A stretch of 64,000 bases of DNA from Bugula neritina (taxonomy: Eukaryota; Animalia; Bryozoa): contig OZ037773.1 of assembly GCA_964035545.1 (NCBI GenBank), positions 7,097,751 to 7,161,750 of the forward strand. Reading direction: 5' to 3'. Below, one piece after another: positions 18,502-62,400 of this stretch. The translations under genes were made by a program, and so were the position numbers. Position 1 is the stretch's first letter; every line of letters begins with the position of its first letter. The notes under the pieces are model-generated. The model was given only the letters and a program-made list of their open reading frames with translations, had not been told where the DNA came from and searched no databases.

Positions 18502-20873
18502 ATGAGTGAGTATATTTGCTGATAGTAGTAATGGCAAGTAGATTCTATAGAATGCCATAGGATTATTTGATACATTTTTGAAAAGTAATTAAATTTAGTT
18601 TGAAAAGTAAAAAAAAGTTATGTTTGTAAATGTACAAAAGCTGAACTAAATAAAAAAACTAGTATAATAAAAAAAAATGTTACTGAAAACTTGGCTAAAA
18701 TACTAAATCAACATAATTTTAGGTCAGCAGTATTTAGCTAATTTTAATAAACAAATTTTTTGCTACTTTGGAAACAATATTGTGTTTCTCTGCATTATTT
18801 GCTGGCTCTAGTTACACAAATGTTTACTTTTTTTGAGATCAGATTTATGCAAAATATTTTATAAATAACTTTTGTCCACAACTTTTATTAGTAAAGCTAA
18901 AGCTTGCATCAATAGAATAGTGAATGAAAAAAGGGGTTGTATATTATTTTTAATCATTTCTTTCTGGTTAAAATTTGTAGATAAAGTAACTTTTTTCTCC
19001 GTTTTCTGCACCTGCACCGTGTTGTTCATCTATGCAGTTGAATCTGCCAGTATTCACAGGTTTGTAAATATTCTCATACAATCATAACATTAAATTTAAT
19101 TGTGTAGAATTAAATGTTTATTTTACTTCTTTGTTCTTTGAACCGAGTTAAAGTTGCTTACAGCGTACCTTCTATTTTAGCATTCATTAGATTGGTTTAG
19201 CTTAACAAGAAATTAATTCTATTGGTTACAGGAATATTTTCCGTGTAGCTCGAAAGGAAAGGTCATTAAGTGCATTTTGTGCTGCGGAGCTGACAACGAA
19301 GCTGAATAATTCGTTGGGTTTATTAAAGACTCTGAATGACTTCTACATTGTAAGTTCTTACAAGAATGTCTAAACTGCAAAGATATGGATTGTCTTTAAT
19401 CTTATATTATAAGTTTCTATAATATATTTTGAATTTGTGGTATGTAGGGGCCTGAGCAATGAAACGATTATTTGAATAAGCTTAGAAATGTAGTGATAGT
19501 ATGTTATAAATTTTGTTTGATTAAAGTAAAAAGAGATTGCATCTAACTTTCTCGGGTGTCTTGGAAGTTTGTCCAGAGAGATCATTTTTGTAATAAAGTT
19601 GAATAGAAAGGAAATGTTAATAACTGGAATTTGGTTTCAGGATCAACACCTTTGTCCTGGAGCTGGCAAACAACCAACTTATGCCAGTGCCTACTTAACC
19701 TGCAGCTACTTTGAAGTGAGTGATGTACTATCAAAGTTTGGCCAGAATTTATAGTCTTCATGTTTTGATCTTTAAGCAAATGGGAGCTAAGATATTCCAT
19801 GTTGCAATTCATATTGCTTATAACTTGCCTATATCTCATTTGAACTATTAAAAAAGAAGGGAGATACTAAAAAAGAAATTGTTTGTGACGTTTCAATGTA
19901 GTTTTATTTTTTGTTAGCATTTGATCACTGAACGCAAGCTTGCTAATGAATTACATGAAAATCTTTGCTTGCTGGAAATTGCAATGTCGAAAGACCACCC
20001 AGAACTAGCTCAGCTTAATGAGAATGTCCGTTATGTCATCGGAATGATCACATCTGACGAAGCTCTTGCTGTTTGTGACACAACTCATTTCGTGAGTTAA
20101 TAGTTAATGTATATATTAGTTTAAGATTTCATTAAAAACACAGCATTGAAATATTTTAATTTTACTAAAATGATGAAAGCTGTAAAATCTATTTTTAAAA
20201 CTAAATTTGCTAGGTCGATGGTAATAACCAAAACTCTCTACACACACAAGTTTTCAACATACTAGTTGAGTAAATATGTAAAATCCTAATAAATTTCAAA
20301 CCATAGATTCATTTATTGGGAATATTTGTGATCTTGTTTAGGTTTTAGTTGTTTTTTTAAATTATCTGCTATTAAAACAAAACACAAGTTTTTATTCAAT
20401 TCTTGTTGGCCATTATTATACAGATGAATCGGACTGAGACGATTGGTTACCATAACGTGTACTACAACTCTCTAGTTCCTTTATACGACCACAGCATATG
20501 TGCATTAGCCACCTGCAACCTGCAGGAGAGTATATCTTCAGAAGACCAAGAATCTTCTGCAGAACCAGAATCTAGTGCGGAAGACCAAGGATCTTCTGCA
20601 GAGCCAGAATCTAGCGCAGAACCAGAGTCAAGTGGAGAATCTGAGGTTAATGCGGAGCCAGAGTCCAGTGCAGAACCAGAATCTAGTGCAGAACCAGAGT
20701 CAAGTGGAGAATCAGAGCTTAGCGCAGAACCTGAGTCTAGCGCAGAACCAGAGTCTAGCGCAGAACTCAAGTCTAAAGCGAAGCGAGAGCTTAGTGCAGA
20801 ACCAGGGTCCAGTGCATCATACTTGTATTCTGATTTGCCTGTTTTTATAGAATGTATAGATGCCAACATGTAA
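18502..20873 (+). CDS. Secreted 8-Cys helical protein, paralog 4 (299 aa, acidic SAEPES-repeat insert)
   Basis: Exons 18502-18505, 18981-19059, 19232-19349, 19641-19715, 19918-20091, 20424-20873; 900 nt. MNKVTFFSVFCTCTVLFIYAVESASIHRNIFRVARKERSLSAFCAAELTTKLNNSLGLLKTLNDFYIDQHLCPGAGKQPTYASAYLTCSYFEHLITERKLANELHENLCLLEIAMSKDHPELAQLNENVRYVIGMITSDEALAVCDTTHFMNRTETIGYHNVYYNSLVPLYDHSICALATCNLQES...(SAEPES)n...YLYSDLPVFIECIDANM. TATAAAAG at 18407. Confidence 0.9.
20535..20817 (+). repeat. Coding 18-bp tandem repeat (SAEPES hexapeptide, about 15 units)
   Basis: In frame within the last exon of paralog 4, with synonymous variation between units. Confidence 0.9.
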
Positions 20874-42098: not shown

Positions 42099-44849
42099 AA
42101 AACACAACTAGTTAGATCAATTAAAAGAGTTATTAAATCAACTACTTTTGGAAGCAGCTATAGTGTACTAATGGAGAAGAAAATAATAGCTCAGTTAGAA
42201 CTATAAAGTCATGGTGTTTATTATCAGTTAATTGTAATTGATTAACATCTGGCACTGATCTAACTCTGTTTAAAAGTAAAATAACCAGTTTAGGAAAAAA
42301 ACTGAGGAATATTGTACAGGTTTAAGTAAGAAAATTAAATGAAATAACTTATTAGTTATTGATGACTATGGCTTTAGCCATACAATGTAAAATTATCTTA
42401 CATGCCTGAACTAATTTTATTAATGTAATGGTTGTGTTTAAATTTAAGTTGCACAAGTTAATAAATTTCATCACTGTGCTAATTTAATTTCAGCCACATC
42501 TAGATCTGAAAGCCAAAGTTTTCAATTTGAATTCAATTCCATTCTAAACTGCACAAAAGCTACATAATTAGACTGATTACAAATATAGAAAAAATTTAAT
42601 CTGAAGCATTAAACTTTACTCCAGGTTAGCTTGTTTGCCTCCTCAATTTGTGATTTAATGATTTGAATATTGATGCTAATTTAATGCAAATGTAACCCAC
42701 AGATTTAAAATGTTTCAACTTTGAGTTAACACCTCCTTCACTTTGGAAAGCAAAAATGCACAGTGCTTAATTACATCTTTTAAAGTAATTGAATAAAATT
42801 CCTCCACTATTATGTTGTTTCTCATAACACCGTTTTTGTGACTGGATGGACAAGTTGTGATGCTGAATTCACACAGCCTTTAGATGGACACTTTGTAGTG
42901 TATTGACTCTGTGGCTGTCAAATTCTATCTTCAACTCTATGAAGAGTCAATTCTAGCATTTGGCAGAAATAAAACAGTACAGAAGGAAGGGTTGCATGAT
43001 CTAGGGAGTTTTTAGGTTCAATACCTAAGAAGTCTTTTGATTTAGTCTCTATGAAAGTTCTTAGGTCCAATTCTGAGAAAATTCTTAGGTTAACTAATGT
43101 CGATCCCTGTACACCTCACCAGGCTTTCCAGCTTGCATGGATGTGAGATCTTACGAGATCAATATGCCAAATGTATATGCTGTAGACATCCAACAGCATG
43201 ACTCTGAACATGACAGAAGAGCCTTATCACCCCCAGCCTACAGTGTCAACTGCATTCCAATTGTTTGTTTACTGGCTGTGTGCATTGTCAGCATTGCAAA
43301 ATAGTTTCATCTAGTTTTGATTGTAATTTATACCATAGATGGTGTATTAGCAACAAACAACCAGACTATATTCAACACAATTATTTTAAAACATATTGTA
43401 ACAGAACTTTTAAACAGGTCTAGCTTTATTGGGATTCCCCAGTGGCCCCATTAGCATAATGGTTAGCAAAAAGATCTGGTTGCTAATTGAATCCAGATGT
43501 GAGTAATTAATTGATGACTAAAGACAAATTAAGTATTGTGCATACTATTTACTAGTTGACATTATTTGAAGGAGTAAATTTTACCAAAGAAAATATATTT
43601 TCAATCCGTGTACTTGCATTTACACTAAAACATTGATTACAATTCATTAGTTATCATCCATTGAATAGGCAAATTTGCTAGCTGAGTGCATGCATGCATT
43701 TATTTTCTTTGGCTCATAAAAATAAACTATTTGGTCAGTCTGGTTAATTAAGTGGGTGCTTCATGGTGGCTTACCCTATGCAGGAAGATCAGAAAAACAG
43801 CACCATCACTTCTGTCACATCTAAAGCTCTGCCTTTTGGGCTGTTTTTCCTCTTTCTTGTTAGGTTTTTAAGTAAAATAGCATGCATGGATGGCAAACAC
43901 ATTCTTTCTTGCGTAGATTAGGTTTACCTGATAAAATACTTAATAAAACAAATTAAACTCAATAAATTGTAGCTAATCAGAAATAATTAGGAGTAATGCA
44001 ATTACTTCTAAAATTATACTAAACAAATATTATAAAATATATAATTAAACTGAACGCATTAGCATATTAAAAATAATAGAAAGCAATCAAGGTTGCTTTT
44101 CCAAAAGAATTTGTAAATAATGTACACATTTTGGGAATACATACATTCCCTCTTCTTAGAGATGCTTTCATGGAATAAGAAAGTTTAAATACTTAGAACT
44201 GCATGTTGGCCCACTTTCTATGGATCACGATGATTTCATGTTTCTGTGTTTCCCTGTAGATTTGGTAAATGAATATTCTGGTCACACTTGGTTGGTAACT
44301 TTTGAACAGGTGTGTTTTTTTGATAGCAAAGAATAAAAAAGTTTCAAAGTTTCAAAATGCATGTTGGCCCAATTTCTGTGGATGATAGATGTTCTTGTAG
44401 AAGCATAGCTTGCATTTCGCTTGTCTGTTGCTGGCCTTATAGAGATGCTTCTTGAAATGTCTTTTATTTTTCAAGATAAAAGAGTCTTTACTCTTTTGTA
44501 AACTGATCTTGAGTGTTTGTAAACTTTCTTTGGATTGTGAATATTCTTGTAGAAGCATAGCTTGCATTTTGTTTGTCTACTGCTGACCTTTTAGAGATGC
44601 TTCTGGAAATGTCTTTTCTCTTTCGAGGTAAAAGAGTATTTTCTCTAAAACTAAAAAACTAAAGTAAACACATAAACCATTTAAAATGTTGCTACTTGAA
44701 AACTTTTTAAAGAGCTTGCATGCATGGCAAACACATTCTTTCTTGCATAGATTAAACTTACCTGATAAAAATACTTAATAAGACAAACTAAACTCAATAA
44801 CTTGTGGCTAATTAGAAATAATTAAGAGAGATGTCATTACTTTACTTAA

Positions 44850-46424
44850 AAGATGCTTTACTCTTTTGTGAACTAATCTTGAGTGTTTGTAAACTTTCAA
44901 GATTTGGATTGTGAATATTCTTGTAGAAGCATAGCTTGCATTTCGCTTGTCTATTGCTGACCTTATAGAGATGCTTCTTGAAATGTCTTTTCTCTTCCGA
45001 GGTAAAAGAGCATTTTCTCTTTTGTGAACTGATCTTGAGTGTTTGTAAACTTTCTTTGGATTGTGAATATTCTTGTAGAAGCATAGCTTGCATTTCGCTT
45101 GTCTATTGCTGACGTCATAGAGATGCTTCTGGAAATGTCTTTTTCCTTTTGAGGTAAAAGAGCCTTTACTTCTTTGTAAACTTATCTTGAGTGTTTGTAA
45201 ACTTTCTTTGGATGGTGAATATTCTTGTAGAAGCATAGCTTGCATTTTGTTTGCTTATTGCTGACCTTATAGAGATGCTTCTTGAAATGTCTTTTATCTT
45301 CCGAGGTAAAAGAGTCTTTACTTTTTTGTAAACTGATCTTGAGTGTTTGTAAACTTTCTTTGGATTGTGAATATTCTTGTAGAAGCATAGCTTGCATTTT
45401 GCTTGCCTATTGCTGACCTTATAGAGATGCTTCTTGAAATGTCTTTTCTCTTCCGAGGTAAAAGAGTCTTTACTCTTTTGTAAACTGATCTTGAGTGTTT
45501 GTAAACTTTCTTTGGATTGTGAATATTCTTGTAGAAGCACAGCTTGATTTCGCTTGTCGGTTGCTGACGTCATAGAGATGCTTCTTGAAATGTCTTTTCT
45601 CTTCCGAGGTAAAAGAGTCTTTACTCTTTTGTAAACTGATCTTGAGTGTTTGTAAACTTTCTTTGGATTGTGAATATTCTTGTAGAAGCATAGCTTGCAT
45701 TTTGTTTGCTTATTGCTGACCTTACAGAGATGCTTCTTGAAATGTCTTTTATCTTTTAAGGTAAAAGAGCATTTTCTCTTTTGTGAACTGATCTTGAGTG
45801 TTTGTAAACTTTCTTTGGATTGTGAATATTCTTGTAGAAGCATAGCTTGCATTTCGCTTGTCTATTGTTGACGTCATAGAGATGCTTCTGGAAATTTCTT
45901 TTATCTTTGGAGGTAAAGAGCCTTTACTCCTTTGTAAACTGATCTTGAGTGTTTGTAAACTTTCTTTGGATTGTGAATATTCTTGTAGAAGCATAGCTTG
46001 CATTTCGCTTGTCTATTGCTGACGTCATAGAGATGCTTCTTGAAATGTCTTTTTCCTTTGGAGGTAAAAGAGCATTTTCTCTTTTGTGAACTGATCTTGA
46101 GTGTTTGTAAACTTTCTTTGGATGGTGAATATTCTTGTAGAAGCATAGCTTGCATTTCGTTTGCTTATTGCTGACCTTATAGAGATGCTTCTTGAAATGT
46201 CTTTTATCTTCCGAGGTAAAAGAGTCTTTACTCTTTTGTAAACTGATCTTGAGTGTTTGTAAACTTTCTTTGGATTGTGAATATTCTTGTACAAGCAAAG
46301 CTTGCATTTCGCCTGTCTATTGTGGGCCTTATAGAAATGCTTCTTGAATTTTTTGGGTCTTTTGAGGTAAAAGAGCATTGACGGCAGGTATATTCTTCCC
46401 TGTGTGGTTTATTCTTTTTTCGAT
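44850..46424 (-). repeat. 152-bp satellite (about 10 units) derived from a two-finger C2H2 exon
   Basis: Equivalent ORF starts recur at 45093, 45245, 45397, 45700, 45852, 46003, 46155, 46307. Translation ...CSFTSKDKRHFKKHLYK...KCKLCFYKNIHNPKKVYKHSRSVH. Further partial arrays at 44365-44645 and 47605-48050. Confidence 0.93.
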
Positions 46425-49373
46425 CTGCAAAGTTAATAAAAGAAAGATTAATTTGCAAGATTGTTTAAAAGAGATATAATAAACTATGATGCTAAACAAA
46501 ATACTTCAAAATAAGTGATGGAAAACAGTTTAAGGATCTCTCATAACTTAATAAAACCTCAGCCAATAAGTCATTAACATATATAGTTTAGAATCATTAC
46601 TTCTTTTCTTTATTACAGTAAAAATATTTTATGAGTTAACTATGATAGGTTTTTAATTTAAATATAATATTAGTTATTCAACCATCAATTTGTTCTAAGC
46701 ACGCAAAATGGTAGAGTATAGAAATATTCCATGGGTATGCAATGCATATACAAACACTGAAATTAATGAAAAGTATTCTTTTACTTGAAACTCATTGATC
46801 AAATTTTCTGTAGAACTCCTCTGCTAGTTCAGTGTAAAGGTCAGTATCCATGTCTGTCTGTTTGTCTGTCTGTTTGTCTCCTCTCAGGTAAAATAAACAT
46901 GCACTGGTTCTTGAAATGTCTTTTTTTCTGAGGTAAAAGAGCATTTTTTCTTTGAATGTAGAAGAGCATTAATGTCAGGTGTATTCTTACCTTCGCGTTT
47001 ATTCTTACTTCGCTCTGTAAAAGATTGCATGTGAGTGGTATAATAAACTATAATACAAAACAGAAAACTTCAAAATATGTGATAAAAAACATTTCAACAT
47101 TCTCAAATAATTTTAATACTTATTCCTGCTTAAAATAAAGCTTTGAAATAACAAAGCCAACCTCCACACATCTCCAATGCTGTGTTGATCCATGAATGTT
47201 ATCTTTTTTATGCCCGTAGCCTCTGTATATGAGGTTGACTCCTCGGCCCTTTTTGATGACTGTTGTTGGTTCCATGATAAAGTATTGATTACTAATAGAC
47301 TTTTATATTTTATAAAGCCTTTTATAGCTTTTTTTATAAACTAAAAAATTAAACTAAACACATAAAACATGTAAAATATTGCTACTTGAAATTTTTTTGA
47401 AATATCACGCGTGCATGGCAAACACATTCTTTCTTGCATAGATTAAGTTTACCTGATAAAAATACTTAATAAAACAAACTAAACTCAATAACTTGTAGCT
47501 AATTAGCAATAATTAAAAAAGATGTAATTACTTTTTCAAATTATACTGAATAAACATATAACATATAAGAAAAAAAAGTAAAAAAGTTTAAAAACTTAGA
47601 ACTGCATGTTGGCTCAATTTCTATGGATGATAGATATGCTTAGCTGGGATTTTGCTTGTCTATTGCTGACCTTATAGAGATGCTTCTTGAAATGTCTTTT
47701 ATCTTTCGAAGTAAAAGAGCATTTTCTCTTTTGTGAACTGATCTTGAGTGTTTGTAAACTTTCTTTGGATGGTGAATATTCTTGTAGAAGCATAGCTTGC
47801 ATTTCGCTTGTCTATTGCTGACGTCATAGAGATGCTTCTTGAAATGTCTTTTTCCTTTTGAGGTAAAAGAGCATTTTCTCTTTTGTGAACTGATCTTGAG
47901 TGTTTGTAAACTTTCTTTGGATGGTGAATATTCTTGTAGAAGCACAGCTTGCATTTCACTTGTCTATTGTCGACCTTATAGAGATGCTTCTTGAAATGTC
48001 TTTTCTCTTTGGCATAAAAGAACATTGACAACAGGTATATTTTTCTCTGTGAAAAAAAATAAAGAAGATCAATAGTTGAAAAATGCATAGAGGCCCAATT
48101 TCTTGGGATGATGACAACTTCATGCTTCTGTGTTTTTCTTTAGATGTAGTGGTTGGTTAAGTTGTTGACCAAATCTGTTGGTAACTTTCCTTCTTGCATG
48201 AAATAATAAAGGTTAAAAATTTAAAGTTCCATTTTAATGTATATAGATTTCTTTTATAATTCTTTTAAGTTTTTGAAATAAAAAAAGCATCAGTTGTTAT
48301 AGGTTTATTTTTGCATGTATTAATAGATATCAATTAATTAAAATACATGGTGGTACACTTTCTGGTTTAGCCTCACTTCAGCCTCTCAACTCAGTGCCCT
48401 AGTCTTAAGGAATATGTATGTATCTTTGCTGGTCTTCAAGTTAAACAGTGTGTCGTTGATCGCTTTCCTTAATGAAGAGTTATGTCCACATTGTAATGTA
48501 AAGCAGTCAGTTTCAACTCAGATATATCTTTGAAGCTTATTTGGAAATTATTGTTTTTCTTTTTTTCTAATATCTCATCTATTTTTCTGCTTACAGCTTC
48601 TTAGCACAGCTCATAACATTTTATTTTTGGCTCTGCAAAAGTTAGCAACATAACTATTTGCTTTCTAAGGTTGTGTTAAAAATAAGTAATAAAATAGAAC
48701 AATAAACTAAACATTTTTCCAATGATCTTTTTGATTGCTGTTTGCAATCATTGGCACCCAGTTTTTAAATAATAAATGTTTCCCTAAAAACATAATATTT
48801 GGTTCTTTTGGTGTAAACTCTTTCGAAATTATACCCAAAATGTTGTATGTTTTCAAGTGAACTATAGTATAGATGGAACATACAATAATTATACAATGTT
48901 AGTGAAACTTGGTATTTTTGAGAATCATTGTTTTGAGTGCAATGCGTTTGCTTGATTGATTGTTTTTTATAAAGATGAAGTAGTTTATTGATTCAAAGCT
49001 GTTGAATCTAATTCAATTTATCTCTAATTGAGTATTTGCAACTGTTAATCATTTACTATGATTAGTGACTGCTCACTCTGCATGACTTGTTCTTTTTAGT
49101 TTATTTATACTCTGAAAATAACTGATAAACAGCTCAAATAAAATAATGGTTTAATGACTTAGTTTTAATACAAAATTTTTATAAATATCAGACCTTTTTC
49201 ACTATAAAAAGCATTTTATGCCACAATATGTTCACAGACCTGTTGGCTAGATTAGATTTCAAGCTCATAAAAATTAAATCATGGTTTGATTGCCAAAGAG
49301 ATTATGTGCCTAGAAGCTCCACGGTTTCTCATCACAAGCTGGAGAATCAGCACCTGGGTACCTTTCACTTCCG

Positions 49374-49582: not shown

Positions 49583-51335
49583 CTGCAAAGTTAGGAAAAG
49601 AAATATTAATTTGCAAGATTGCTCAAAAGTAGTATAATTAACTATAATACTAAACAGAATACTTCAAAATAAGTGATGGAAAGCAGTTTAAGGATCTCTC
49701 ATAACTTAATAAAACCTCAGCCAATAAGTCATTAACAGATATAGTTTAGAATCATTACTTCCTTCTCTTAATTACAGCTAAATTATCTCATGAGTGAACT
49801 ATGATAGGCTTTTAATTTAAATATAATATTAGTTATTCAATCATCAATTTGTTCTAAGCACGCAGAATGTTAAAGTATAGAAATCTTTCATGGGTATGCA
49901 ATGCATATACAAACACTGAAATTAATACAAAGTATTATTTTACTTGAAACTCGTTGATCAAATTTTCTGTAGAACTCCTCTGCTAGTTTAGCGTAAAGGT
50001 CAGTATCCATATCTGTCTAATTATCTGTCTGTTTGTCTCTTCTCAGGTAAAATAAACATGTACTGGTTATGTGCTGATTCCAGCAGCCTTAATATAGTTT
50101 AGAAAAGTAGCTAGCTGTTGTAGCCACAGGTTAGCCAGCATTAATTATATGTAATACAATGAGTCTGGATAAATCTAGCTGTGTGCATGGCTATATGAAA
50201 AGTCATTCTAGCTGTAACAGCCTTGACTGAAGTAAATTTGTTCCCCTCCCCAACCCTTCCTTAATTATGGTAACAGCAGATTTGGAAACTGCTGGACTAA
50301 TGTTTTCTTTTTCTCTCTACTATTCATCATTTTGGTCTAAACTTCATCTTTACAAGACATGCACTCTATAGTGTTGGTATTTTGGTCTTAAAAAGCTTCA
50401 TGGAAAACATCTCTCTTTTTGTTGAATAAGTTAGATTTTTTCCCAACACACTGGCTCTTTCTAGAATCTCAGAATTTAGAAATTTTTTCAGCAACTATAA
50501 ATACATCTTTTTGTTAAAAACTGTTTTTCAGATTCATTAGATTTGTAGCTTCTGTACCTAAAAAGCTATATTCACACTATAAAGGGTGAAATTCTATTAG
50601 CATTATGTTTTTTATAAATCAAGTAAACCCTATTATAATTGTATAACATGTTTTTCTTTTTTTTTTTGCAGATTTTCTGTGTGTTTTTGATAACTTTTGT
50701 TTCAAGGTCAGGCTATTTCACTCTACATAACAATATACTACAGAACTGTAGCTGAATGTCTCTTCTTTATATTGAATTCTACTCCTAAAGATCTCACATC
50801 TACATACCAACAATGTCTTTGTAGTACAGCTTCACCAGTTGCAGATTAAGTGAGTATTGGTTTCATTTAATTTAAATTTTGACACTTGTATAAACTTAAA
50901 CTATTTTAAGTCATAGAAACTATTATGCTTTAAGTTGTCTTCTCTTGAATAGCATTTTTAGTTCTCAGATAATAGAAATTAATTTAGCAGAAGTTATCAG
51001 CTCTTGCACCACATTGTTTACATGTTTGGTCAGTTTAAATTGCTTTAGTTACTAATAAAATTCAGGTTGTCTTCCCTATAGATAATTTGATTGCAGCACA
51101 ATGTTCCTTATTTGCAGAATTCTGTCAACTCTATTTATGACAAAAACATTCTAAATTCAAATTCACCAGATGATACATAAAGCAAACTAAACTAGCAGCT
51201 ACATTTTGAATAAAAACCAACTAATATCAACAATTGGCATAATATTCTCACTATGATTATTATCAGCAGCTATATTGTTAGAAATCCAATTTTATTTAGT
51301 GTTGTGAATAGTCTCAATCTTCTCTTGTAGCACTA

Positions 51336-51939
51336 TTATCGTGTATAGCAAATACACGCATAGCCTTCACAGTAGCCTGAGCCATAACCTCTGTGGCGAC
51401 AATGACTTCTACACAAATTTGGACGATCAGGGCATCCATGTGGTCTGGGCGGAGCTACACCTGTGAAGTATATTGAGTCAATATGGTTAATTTATTCTTA
51501 GTGGAAGAATTTGCAGCTGGTGATGAGATTCTGATAATTGTAAAACATCTGCTCACACGAGACTCGAACCAGAGACCTCCAACAAATATATCGGATCAAT
51601 ATGGTTAGTTTAATCACAGCATAAGAATTTAGTTATATACATTGAAACTGCAGCTGGTGATGTGAGTTGTAAAAAAGTTGCTCCCACCAGGACTCGAACC
51701 ACGGATCTCTAACAATGCACGTTGATGCTTGCTAACCATTACACTATGGGGGCGACTGGGAATTCCAACACTACAGCAATCAAACTGTAGTTTAGACAAT
51801 GGAATAATAGTTGTACTTTATCTGATTCTGCTCTTTTCTTACCTGACCAGGGCACACCATCCATTACAAAATCAGATGCAGCTAAGTTTAGAAGAAGAAA
51901 GATTAGAGCAGCAGAAATGATTAAGTGTGGGTTCTTCAT
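51336..51939 (-). CDS. CS-alpha-beta (invertebrate-type) defensin precursor, 73 aa
   Basis: Coding exons 51939-51843 and 51460-51336, phase-1 GT-AG intron. MKNPHLIISAALIFLLLNLAASDFVMDGVPWSGVAPPRPHGCPDRPNLCRSHCRHRGYGSGYCEGYACICYTR. Signal peptide plus C-x6-C-x3-C-x9-C-x4-C-x-C with HGCP start and GYC motif; AATAAA at 51296-51291. Confidence 0.92.
51545..51753 (-). mobile_element. Degenerate tRNA-like element plus a partial duplicate in the defensin intron
   Basis: Minus strand 51753-51679: GCCCCCATAGTGTAATGGTTAGC...GGTTCGAGTCCTGGTGGGAGCA followed by a T run. T and anticodon stems are mismatched; a second B-box copy lies near 51550-51580. Confidence 0.6.
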
Positions 51940-52809
51940 GCTAACTTCTGGAGAATATCAGCCTATAAAATAATATGTTACTTTGACATTTTCGGGTCAA
52001 ATATTCAAATGGTAACACTCGTTTTAATATTTCACTCCAGAAGTGGTACAGTTTTACTAAATGCAGAATTTTTTTGTTTATTAGATAATCAGAATTGACT
52101 TGTGTTGTATAGACTGCTAAAATACTTGCAATTTTTCAGTTTTCACAAAATCACTTTTGATATATATAGCTTTTATTCAACAATTTGTAAGTTTTGTTTT
52201 TATATATTGTCAATGCAAGATTTAAAAATTAAGCATCTCTATTTTTAAAACTTTTAATTTGTATTGACCCAATTACTAATGTTTAAACTTTAATTTTACT
52301 AAATCCTAAGGACAACTTCTGTGTTGAAAATTTTTAACTATGTTAAATTTTTCAATTTTAGGAATTAATTTTTTGTGCTGTTTTTACTTGGTTTTACTAA
52401 TATGAATATGGATTTTTTAAAATTACAAGTGTCAATGTCATACATTTATTTTAATCACAATAAATTTTGAAGTCAATGGAAAAAAAATTTGTTTTTAGTG
52501 TATTTGAAGTACATGAATATTGAGTCAAAATATTAGAATCGAAAGTGAAGTTGCACAAAAACAAAAAGAAAATCAATTGAAAATTTCCATTTAAATTATC
52601 AGCTTACATATACTGTTGGCACTAGCTACATAATGTATATCTTTTAAAAACTTGATATACTTGTTAAAGCTGTGTTTATTTAAATTGATTTTTTGCAATG
52701 TGAGTTACTATTTATATAAAAATCCTACAAATAATATACAATATACAGATAAAAATATAATATAATAAATACAAATAATATTTGCATACTGCTTTCTTTA
52801 CCTTATTAC

Positions 52810-57877: not shown

Positions 57878-59459
57878 TTATAGTTAGTTGACGATCCTAG
57901 CTAGACGAGACAGTCTATAAAAAGACAGCTGTGAGTTACTATTATAATAGCGAGCTATCGAAGATATTTAGAACACTAAACACGGTCAAATTTTAGATAT
58001 TCAACTTTTCTCCTTTATAATTGTACCAAAACAGAAATGATTATTTTAAGTGTAACCACTCACACTGAATTAGAAATATTTTCCAGCTATAACTATTACT
58101 ATAGATTAAGACTAAGCACCATATTATTTGTTATCATGGTGATTAGTTGCATATCATCTGTGATCATACTGCTACTAAACTAATAATGTACTTGTTCATG
58201 TTTTATAGTAGAAATATTTCATATTTATATTAATATTCATATTCATATTGGTGCTACTTACTACTCAGTTACCAGTTATTGTTATTGTATTTTAAATTAT
58301 TATTTTATGTTAAATTCTTAAAGTTACTAAAACCAAAGGTGTCGCACTAACTAGATTGCACTTATAGTTATTAATTAAAAGTAAACCGATTATCACTGCA
58401 GCTATTAAATGTAAGTTGATTATCATGTTGAAGTTAGTCAATGTTATCTAGTTATAAGTTATGTTGAAAATTTGAATTTAAAATTAATCTTAATAGTCAT
58501 CACACTCAAATTTAGTGAGAAAACTCAAAATCTTTAGATATATTTGACTTCATAGCTCGACAAAGATGTAAAATAATTATGATGGTAATCACTAATGTTG
58601 TTTAGCCTAAAACATAATTTTAATAGCTAATATGTGTGCAATTTTAATCAGTGTTTTAAGTAATAGCTATTTTCTTTCCTACAGTTACAGCTGTAAAACA
58701 TCCTAACTTTCACTTTGACTGTAACTTCTTTTGCAAATGCTGAATGTGAGTTAAACAGTGAGTGTCTGAGTTTATGTTTTTTTTTTTGGTTATTAGGTAG
58801 TTATTGTTCTAAACTTAATTAAAGCCAGTAAAGCTCAAACTGGTAATCCTCAAATTATTGTTAGTTACTAATTATCACTAGTAACTCCAGCGCTATGTTT
58901 GAGTATGAACTTTTTGTCCCACAGTTTTTTTTTAGTGAGTGGTACAAAAGTTCATTGCTTTGCTGTAAAATAAAGCAGAAGATTTGCTAAATCTGTGAAA
59001 TACTGTTGAAAATAGCTTGCTACAGCTTTGAGTTGCAACTCACTTCTCATCTCAATCTCTTAGCTCAAGAAACTCTATGGTAACAGTTGAATGCAGTTTG
59101 TGCTATGAATTTTAAAATCTGCTGTGATTTTATTTTACCTCTACTGATTTTATTTATAATAAAAGCATATAGTCTAGATGTGATTTATCAAATAGACCAG
59201 GTATGTCATAAATAGTCTACTTGAAATTTGATAAGTGGCTCTTGTTGTGGGCTTTAAAGTCGTATCATGACATATCTTTACTTGAAGTTACATTACTGCT
59301 ATGACAGTATCTCGATCTGATAGAGTTCTAGCATTTTTATTGAGATTTTCTGATAAGTTTGTTCAAGGTAACATATTTAACTTGTTGATCCTACTGTCAC
59401 ATGTCTGTACATTTTATTTTTCTAACTTTATATATAAATATTTCTTGCTTCCTTTTAGA

Positions 59460-62400
59460 ATGTTGTGGAGGTTAATCTGGGTGGTAGTTTTATTATCTCT
59501 AGCTGTGTCTGCAGCTTCTGAACAGCCCAACATAATCTTCATAGTGGCTGATGACTACGGCTGGAATGACATTGGTTATCACGGAAGTGAGATCAAAACT
59601 CCAAATCTAGACAAACTCGCTTCTGCCGGAGTGAAGTTGGATAACTACTATGTCCAACCCATATGCACACCAACTCGCAGTCAACTTATGTCCGGTGTGT
59701 TTGTATGGCTACTGCTGATTGTGTTGTGTGATGTTGAATTTGATAAAACTCATGTGGGTTTATAGTCACTATCCCTGTGAGAACCCCTGATGGAAAGGGG
59801 TTTTAAAGCAGGCTAAAAACTTTTTTGGTGCAGCATAGAAGCAATTATGACTGGATGCTCTTCCTAACATCACTGTGATGTTTGGAGTTGAACCACTGAC
59901 CTTGTGTTTACTAGACCAGCTCTCTAACCACTGCTTCTTTAAAGTTACATTTTACAATAATATTTATTTTATTTGCTTATTTGAATATATATTGATTTAT
60001 ACTAGGACGGTACCAGATACATACGGGGCTGCAGCATGGAATTATATGGCCTTGTATGCCTAGTGGTCTACCATTGGATGACCCAACAATGCCAGATAAG
60101 TTGAAGGAAGCTGGATATTCTACACATATGATTGGTTAGTATCTTTGTAATGTTTGTACAATCTGGTTATTTAATTTAATAATATTTGTTGACATGGTGT
60201 TCTAGTTGAAAATATTTTAGTTGTAAATAGATGTTTATATATTCAGGTAAATGGCACCTCGGTTTCTATACTAAAGATTACATCCCAACTTCTAGAGGGT
60301 TTGATAGTTACAGTGGATATTTAACTGGCAGTGAAGACTACTATTCCAGAATGAGGTTACCAAGTTTATGTAGAATATGTATTGTATTATATGTTGTATT
60401 GTAGAACATGTGATGTATTATATGTTATATTGTAGAATATGTATTGTATTATATGTTATATTGTAGAATATGTATTGTATTATATGTTATATTGTAGAAC
60501 ATGTGATGTATTATATGTTATATTGTAGAATATGTATTGTATTATATGTTATATTGTAGAATATGTATTATATGTTATATTGTGGAATATGTATTGTATT
60601 ATATGTTATATTGTAGAATGTGTATTGTATTACATATATTGGGCAGACAACTCTAATGTTGACATAATGCATAGTTTTGTAGGTATAATAATTAGTCCTC
60701 CTTGCATACGTAATCATATAGCTATACACCATCTAGTGTAGACAGTTCTGCTCTCTTATAATGGTGAGACAACTCCTTGCATCTAGTTATATATATGCGA
60801 GGCTTGTCCAATAGCTGTTGTATGCTTTCTTTGGGCTATAGATCTAACAATGGCTTTACTGGACTAGACTACACTGTCAATCAAACAGGGCGAAACGATA
60901 CTTATGGTGAATACTCCGCCCACCTCTTCACCAGACATGCTCAAACTGTCATCAGTAAGTAGTTATGTAATACTTTATCAGTTCAAAGTTATGTAACATC
61001 ATGTGATGATGCCGGCTGACATTCATGATGTCATGACTCAAAGTTGTTGTTAGAGTTTAGACTCTAGAATCTAGATGTATAATATTGTGCAAAATTGACT
61101 AGTTGATACTGTAGCCATATAGTTCTTAATTTTGATTGGTTTATAATTGCAGGGCACGCCCACCTTCAACAATAGGCCCTAACTAGCGCTGTACATATTA
61201 TACCAGCTTTGTAGCTGTTTTAATATTTGTAACAACGTTAAATGCTACTCTTATTGTTTCTTTTCACAAAAGTTACTTGATTGTTTAGTATCAACTCCAT
61301 AAGTAACTACATAGAAGTCACCTTCCACTTAATATGTTCTCTGTTGAACTGCTCTCCATGTTTATTGAATAAAATGAGAGATATACACTTGAAACACTGT
61401 CCAGTGCCTCAGGTGAAACACTGTCCAGTGCCTCAGGTGAAACACTGGGCAGTGCCTTAGGTGAAACACTGTCCAGTGCCTTAGGTGAAACACTGGGCAG
61501 TGCCTTAGGTGAAACACTGGGCAGTGCCTTAGGTGAAACACTGCCCAGTGCCTGAGGCAAACGCTGTCCAGTGACTCAGGTGGCTGGTAAAACCTTCTGC
61601 CATATTTTTTTACCCAACAATTCAGAGAACTGTGTGTATCTTTCTGTATTAATTAGCAGCATGTTGTCTATTGTGTTACAGCCACTCATGCTGCTCAAGA
61701 ATCGTCTCCCCTTTTCCTGTACCTGGCATTCCAGAGTGTCCACAGCCCTATGGAGGTTCCTGAGAAATATGAGAATATGTATTCCAACATAGAGGACAAG
61801 TACAGACGTATATATGCTGGCATGGTATCAGGTGTGTCTTCCTTTATATACCTGTATACCTGTATACTATATACCTGTATACCATATACCTGCATAATAT
61901 TTACCTGCATACTATATACCTGTATACCATATACCTGTATACTGTATACCTGTACACTACATACCTGTATACTGTATACCTGTATACTATATACCTGTAT
62001 ACCATATACCTGTATACTATATACCTGTATACTATATACCTGCCTACTGTATACCTGTATACTATATACCTGTAGCAATGGACGAAGCAGTAGGCAATCT
62101 CACTCAGACTCTGAAAGATTCGGGTCTCCTTGACAATACTATCCTCGTCTTTACCACAGATAACGGTGGCCAGACCCTGTCAGGAGGTAACAACTTCCCA
62201 CTGCGAGGTCGCAAGGCTACATACTGGGAAGGAGGTATGTATTACGTTCCCTCTCTGTGTTAGCATATCCTCTGGTACTGAGCCTAACTTTGTGGACTGT
62301 GTTGCAAACTGCAGCTAACAGTTTCTATAAATGTCCATTGTGGTAGCCTCTGTGCTTTGCTTCTAGGTGTTCGAGGTAACGGGTTTGTGTATAGCCCCCT

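Follow-up and report, generated by a model that had tools for sequence, protein, structure and literature searches.

The question raised by this locus is whether a short, intron-split frame with six cysteines in a bryozoan genome is a functional defensin gene or something less. The locus is a two-exon gene on the minus strand of a 64,000-nucleotide stretch of Bugula neritina DNA (contig OZ037773.1 of assembly GCA_964035545.1, forward-strand positions 7,097,751 to 7,161,750), here called the window, which is C9:7097751-7161750 of the B. neritina genome that we searched. Its ATG lies at position 51939 of the window. Judged from sequence comparison and structure prediction, it is likely a functional gene for a secreted defensin-type peptide, a so far unlisted B. 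neritina member of the cysteine-stabilized alpha-beta (CS-alpha-beta, or cis-) defensins.

Gene structure and splicing

The gene comprises the following features, in positions of the window; the ortholog and paralogs cited as evidence are described below.

51843..51939, minus strand: exon 1, 97 nt, with the ATG, the signal peptide and the start of the pro-segment, ending in phase 1 (sequence, hydropathy, ortholog, paralogs)
51461..51842, minus strand: intron, phase 1, 382 nt, GT...AG (sequence; the orthologous intron is 307 nt, with identical acceptor context)
51336..51460, minus strand: exon 2, 125 nt including the TAA, with the end of the pro-segment and the six-Cys mature domain (sequence; frame, stop and six Cys the same in the ortholog)
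51874..51939, minus strand: predicted signal peptide, 22 codons, cut after A-A-S (-3/-1 rule, hydropathy scan)
51339..51443, minus strand: probable mature peptide, 35 codons, from the Pro after a conserved Pro-Arg (Arg position in relatives; AlphaFold2)
51291..51296, minus strand: AATAAA polyadenylation signal, 40 nt 3' of the stop (sequence; kept in the ortholog)
51964..51970, minus strand: TATA-like TTTTATA, 31 nt 5' of the ATG, a possible core promoter on weak evidence (at the same distance in the ortholog)

The splice donor is GTAAGA, starting at 51842, and the acceptor is tatacttcacAG, with its last base at 51461. A double stop, TAA-TAG, occupies 51338-51333, the coding sequence ending at 51336. 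Other in-frame pairings, through a donor GTGTGC 15 nt upstream or an acceptor 6 nt downstream, would alter only a few residues of the pro-segment. With no ATG in it and a longest start-to-stop open reading frame (ORF) of 26 aa, inside a 51-aa open frame, the mature exon is invisible to an ORF track. A preliminary description of this DNA, made from the letters alone, had proposed just such a hidden gene with a mature exon too short for the ORF track; its coordinates and splice sites are exact, and the residues it listed for the spliced product agree with our exon-by-exon translation, which gives a conceptual precursor of 73 residues. Upstream, a TATATAT near -225 is, like the TTTTATA, common to the window and the ortholog and provides a second candidate start region; kappaB, GATA and C/EBP motifs were sought upstream in both lineages, and only TATA-like runs are shared.

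Precursor and mature peptide

Exon 1 encodes a Lys-containing N terminus and a 14-residue hydrophobic core (Kyte-Doolittle mean up to 2.97, residues 5-14), followed by A-A-S. The probable end of the pro-segment is marked by a single Arg, preceded by Pro, four residues ahead of the first cysteine (Cys1), an arrangement found likewise in the paralog L002 and in the deposited protein P0003. The nearest foreign match, P0016 (58% identity), has Arg at that position without the preceding Pro, and the array genes of B. neritina have a predicted signal cleavage (A-E-A, then S-Y-G-C) at the equivalent site. Each of these proposed routes would leave three residues ahead of Cys1, like the classical G-F-G-C peptides. 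Given the conserved Pro-Arg, the mature N terminus is probably PHGC, one residue earlier than the HGC from which the preliminary description had counted a 34-mer. The dibasic site that it found missing is indeed absent, and in its place stands the conserved Pro-Arg. The 35-residue form has a computed isoelectric point of 8.7, a net charge of about +3 and no Lys. Trimming of the pro-segment by a dipeptidyl-peptidase was also considered and rejected, as its 17 residues do not split into X-Pro or X-Ala dipeptides.

Family and predicted fold

The mature domain has the cysteine spacing C-x6-C-x3-C-x9-C-x4-C-x-C. When the mature exon (40 aa) was compared with Pfam, the only families matched were of the CS-alpha-beta kind: PF14866 (Scorpion_toxin_alpha-beta), the top match, at 23.3 bits against a curated gathering cut-off of 27 (E 8e-5); PF00304 at 21.3 bits against 25.1 (E 3e-4); PF01097 (Defensin_2) at 18.1 bits, or 18.7 with the 35-residue mature piece, against 20.4 (E 2.6e-3); and PF00537 at 17.5 bits against 21.5. 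The Pfam outcome was the same for the 35-residue piece as for the exon. The cut-off of PF01097 is passed by none of the Bugula paralogs, the best of which reaches an E value of 5e-4. The individual family scores are modest because only 35 residues are available, yet they are unanimous.

Sequence matches in the PDB point the same way, with E values from 5e-4 upward, and include Anopheles-derived defensin hybrids, LaIT2, BmKDfsin3, lucifensin, sapecin, micasin and plectasin (for instance 2e3e, E 4.8e-4; 7wkf, 6.2e-4; 5xa6, 5.6e-3), together with cobatoxin and beta-KTx-like peptides. To predict the fold we gave AlphaFold2 an alignment of eight Bugula mature domains, in which only the six Cys are invariant. 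The model (predicted local distance difference test score, pLDDT, 90.3) has a helix at residues 8-17 and a hairpin of strands at 22-26 and 29-33, and for the mature domain this is a high-confidence prediction of the helix-plus-hairpin defensin fold, the CS-alpha-beta topology on which the preliminary description had staked its assignment. For the disulfides we infer the pairing C1-C4, C2-C5 and C3-C6. All 50 of the Foldseek matches listed are CS-alpha-beta peptides, as are the VIA matches listed, and the structures matched best over the full length are eurocin, plectasin, MGD-1 of mussel and an oyster defensin, which are antibacterial defensins and not toxins. In the ESM Atlas, scorpion short toxins form the nearest clusters (0.86), a lead only and one that falls in the CS-alpha-beta superfamily too. 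The assignment to CS-alpha-beta defensins of the x-G-C-P kind known from mollusks, arachnids and fungi is borne out by the consistent sub-threshold Pfam matches, the fold matches, the paralogs and the ortholog.

An ortholog in a divergent lineage

A gene caller working on unspliced DNA would output a 66-aa frame that runs from the exon 1 ATG into the intron. Used as a query, this frame retrieved P0028, on the JGI metagenome contig L026 (sample 3300003318). The flanks of that contig are 87-89% identical to the window, which points to the orthologous locus of a divergent Bugula lineage; the 2016 Bugula metagenome paper (PMC5041132) makes no mention of the sample, and the lineage is assigned from the flanks. 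L026 retains the ATG, the GTAAG donor at the same base, the stop, the AATAAA and all six Cys, and the final 12 nt before exon 2 are identical in the two sequences.

The coding differences are unevenly placed. The stretch SGVAPPRPHGCP shows zero replacements, and the 12-residue junction of pro-segment and mature domain is identical. Of the 35 mature residues 8 differ, with HGC, CRSHC, GYC and CICYTR untouched. By the Nei-Gojobori method, the mature domain has 7 synonymous and 12 nonsynonymous differences (Sd and Nd) and a ratio of nonsynonymous to synonymous rates (dN/dS) of 0.39. Exon 1 carries 8 replacements and 0 silent changes, 3 of the replacements, with 0 synonymous changes, falling in the signal-peptide stretch. 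In a simulation of 28 random substitutions, the start, stop, splice dinucleotides, frame and six Cys all stayed intact in 1.3% of trials. Because so few neutral trials preserve these features, the comparison of the two sequences argues that the window gene is under selection, with loops changing fast, as is common in host-defense peptides.

Paralogs and database relatives

A search of the B. neritina genome with the mature exon gave 25 matches, the window gene included, in six sequence types.

C9, minus strand: the window gene
C2:31394253-31397360: L002, with a long pro-region of K-P-R repeats
C9, 10.43 Mb: L004, with no G-C-P start
C2:28475700-28478900: L023, with a charged C-terminal extension of ~70 residues after the six-Cys domain
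C9:4431383-4577597: two array types, 21 copies (L003, L005-L022) over 146 kb, in both orientations and spaced 2.7-12.9 kb apart

The family is thus abundant in the genome, and UniProt already labels one of the paralogs "Defensin". The cysteine spacing of the window gene recurs in every type except L004 (x5 in the first loop) and L023 (x10 in the third loop). Exon structure was modeled for L002, L004 and the major array type as well, and these have an upstream signal-peptide exon, a phase-1 intron and a GTAAGT or GTGAGT donor. Among family members with the G-C-P start, the Gly is preceded by His, Tyr or Leu. Most array copies encode one identical, very Lys-rich mature peptide (L021 and L022 make up the second sequence type), while their 3-kb surroundings are just 82-89% identical; this disparity points to strong selection on the array coding exon or to gene conversion.

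A profile search of 1.84 billion representatives gave 23 matches. Among the Bugula proteins, the spliced model of L002 corresponds to P0003, which is KAF6022172.1, a hypothetical protein of the 2020 draft genome of B. neritina, and that of L004 to P0006, which is KAF6033208.1 and UniProt A0A7J7K6I7, the protein automatically named "Defensin". These two correspondences independently confirm B. neritina as the species of the genome. P0005 is an unspliced ORF call that matches the mature exon of L023. Beyond Bugula, P0008 is a two-domain protein of the bivalve Tegillarca with the UniProt name "Invertebrate defensins family profile" (PROSITE), and matches of like design include a moth protein with four domains and several short, unnamed precursors. 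P0016 comes from a Logan contig (SRR20069367) without a DNA match in the B. neritina genome and is therefore from another organism.

These relatives place two features that the preliminary description had singled out. The 4-residue C4-C5 loop it called unusual is shared by all Bugula paralogs, a bivalve protein and several unnamed peptides. The GCP-type start is no more distinctive, as [H/Y/L]-G-C-P occurs in the Bugula paralogs except L004 and again in the bivalve protein and unnamed peptides. Both are therefore traits of a wider group rather than of this gene.

Some relatives have peculiarities of their own. The pro-region of L002/P0003 consists of repeated (V/L)-K-P-R-T units, with K-P-R directly before the mature domain, and this assembly and the deposited 2020 protein have different numbers of repeats; the repeats may be a multi-site processing signal. 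The C-terminal extension of L023 is kept in a genomic Logan contig of a sibling lineage (L025), at 84-90% nucleotide identity. P0022 (Logan) and P0017/P0027 (ENA) are short precursors of the x-G-C-P six-Cys design; P0022 has a bacterial-looking, Ala/Pro-rich leader and passes the Pfam cut-offs of two scorpion-toxin-like families.

Function and alternative explanations

If the locus encodes a secreted defensin, the 73-residue precursor would enter the secretory pathway, signal peptidase would cut after A-A-S (residue 22), and the short pro-segment would be removed at the conserved Pro-Arg. This would release a cationic peptide of 35 residues (~+3), with its three disulfides formed, to act as a host-defense peptide. 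The most likely mode would be binding of the cell-wall precursor lipid II of Gram-positive bacteria, as by plectasin, eurocin and oyster defensins, a mechanism that we hold tentatively, at slightly less than an even prospect, given a functional secreted peptide of this type. Plectasin contacts lipid II through F2, G3, C4, C37 and His18, residues also present in numerous fungal and invertebrate defensins (PMC3418506). Counted from PHGC, the probable N terminus, the window peptide and its ortholog have H2-G3-C4, His14-Cys15 and Cys32, so that four of the five contact positions of plectasin are kept: Gly3, Cys4, the His that immediately precedes Cys3, and the final Cys.

Several observations weigh against this account. 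At position 2, His stands in place of the plectasin Phe, and all Pfam scores are below the curated cut-offs. An Arg-Pro bond is a poor substrate for furin-type convertases, which makes the processing step uncertain and leaves room for an HGC start. No kappaB-like motif was found in the 700 nt upstream. The dN/dS value rests on 19 substitutions between two sequences. Finally, the product of the window gene is found neither in a collection of 15 billion proteins, searched at 28-89 aa, nor in the representatives library, and is therefore missing from the 2020 draft annotation and the assembled RNA runs. A word search with the exon 2 open frame (40 coding residues scored) likewise gave no candidate, and none of 596 pattern matches in a metagenome scan with that frame was confirmed.

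These negative protein and metagenome searches are what would be expected of a silent or decaying paralog, intact through recency, unexpressed and without function. A large family should include redundant copies, and a repeat element has been inserted or duplicated in the intron. Absence from collections says little, however, because the 21-copy array gene is equally missing from them, and the start, frame, stop, splice sites, polyadenylation signal and six Cys have survived ~12-16% divergence (P ~0.013), with a mature dN/dS below 1 and the junction of pro-segment and mature domain identical. We consider a silent copy very improbable. The chance occurrence of an open frame with six Cys is favored by nothing more than the shortness of each exon. 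The 64-kb window contains the six-Cys pattern once, and 0 of 100 shuffled windows contain it; with the significant family matches, the conserved ortholog and the gene structure shared with deposited paralogs, this rules chance out for practical purposes.

A CS-alpha-beta peptide need not kill bacteria, and the product might instead be an ion-channel ligand, a peptide of signaling or development, or one that regulates the bacterial associates of the colony. The top Pfam match is the CS-alpha-beta domain of long-chain scorpion toxins, the PDB matches include LaIT2, cobatoxin and beta-KTx, the scorpion short toxins of the ESM Atlas provide their lead, and replacements in exposed loops are frequent between the lineages, as in peptides that co-evolve with a target. 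Scorpion K+ channel toxins of the alpha-KTx type carry a pore-plugging Lys and an aromatic residue as a pair on the face of the beta-sheet. With no Lys in the mature peptide such a pair is impossible, and a channel-toxin role is thus unlikely; moreover, no venom system is known from bryozoans, which further counts against a toxin. The lipid II contact positions, kept when counted from PHGC, and the best full-length structural matches, all to antibacterial defensins, weigh against a non-bactericidal role, which we regard as unlikely, if the most serious of these alternatives. A more specific proposal is that the Bugula defensin family polices bacteria that the colony inherits vertically, the bryostatin-producing symbiont for example, more than pathogens. 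Legume nodule-specific cysteine-rich (NCR) peptides and insect bacteriocyte peptides, which control symbionts, are the model for it. If it were true, fast loop evolution and the 21-copy array with its identical peptide would reflect symbiont tracking, but we give this analogy very little credence. A functional secreted defensin therefore continues to be the explanation that we prefer.

Intron element and other features of the window

The intron and the rest of the window hold further elements.

51679..51753, minus strand: tRNA-like element in the intron, a repeat derived from transfer RNA (tRNA) or a tRNA pseudogene (Rfam tRNA, 26.9 bits against a gathering score of 29)
44808-48088, minus strand: tandem open frames with a basic unit of ~45 residues and the motif ...KCKLCFYKNIHNPKKVYKHSRSV..., in ORFs of up to 228 aa
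20403-20873, plus strand: open frame of repeated acidic A-E-P-E-S-S units
59301-59765, plus strand: a signal-like stretch followed by a sulfatase-type N-terminal motif, ...ADDYGWND...CTPTR...

With a partial second copy downstream, the tRNA-like region of the intron spans 51540-51770 on the minus strand. ARAGORN did not call a tRNA anywhere in the window. In the genome there are 6 weaker copies of the element, and the orthologous intron of L026 lacks ~70 nt of the region. The element is probably a low-copy tRNA-derived repeat. Of the open frames, that at 20403-20873 may be an exon of a secreted or low-complexity protein, or a minisatellite, and that at 59301-59765 probably represents exon 1 of an arylsulfatase gene.

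Significance and comparison with known systems

A full-text literature search found no paper on CS-alpha-beta defensins of Bryozoa, only a big defensin, which belongs to the other superfamily, from a Flustra transcriptome. The window gene offers a short (35-residue) candidate with three disulfides from an unstudied phylum, and with its sister-lineage variant, eight replacements away, it makes a structure-activity pair. It also illustrates how easily intron-split peptide genes are missed, as the products of both it and the 21-copy array gene are missing from large collections. What is known of defensins is left unchanged: in its fold and probable target, as in the layout of its precursor and the phase of its intron, the gene follows convention. 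In this superfamily the nasonins of Nasonia, for example, are known to have a phase-1 intron behind the signal peptide (PMC2853521).

Within the species, the deposited KAF6033208.1 and KAF6022172.1 share with the window gene the family, the two-exon phase-1 structure and the C-x3-C ... C-x4-C-x-C core. The first of these (C9:10.43 Mb), 59% identical to the window peptide over 29 residues, differs in lacking the G-C-P start and in its 5-residue n-loop, and the second (C2:31.40 Mb) in its long pro-region of K-P-R repeats. The arthropod defensins of PF01097 and the scorpion defensins and beta-KTx-like peptides, with BmKDfsin3 and LaIT2 as examples, have the same Cys framework and fold and supply the best PDB sequence matches; in contrast to them, the window peptide comes from a lophotrochozoan, scores below the PF01097 cut-off and contains no Lys.

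The closest parallel in design is the ancient "x-F-G-C-P" type, represented by plectasin, eurocin, MGD-1 and Cg-Def. Like these, the window peptide has three residues before Cys1 with Gly adjoining it, a CxxxC with His before the second Cys and a CxC in the last strand, and it is a cationic peptide with a predicted secretory precursor; counted from PHGC, it would also keep the lipid II contact positions other than Phe2. The C4-C5 loop of the four reference peptides is longer than the 4 residues of the window peptide. The pro-segment of the window gene ends in Pro-Arg-Pro, whereas theirs end in a dibasic site, and sequence identity to them is just 31-42%. Position 2 is His and not the Phe of the plectasin type, the n-loop is short (6 residues), and three predicted disulfides compare with four in the molluscan MGD-1 and Cg-Def.
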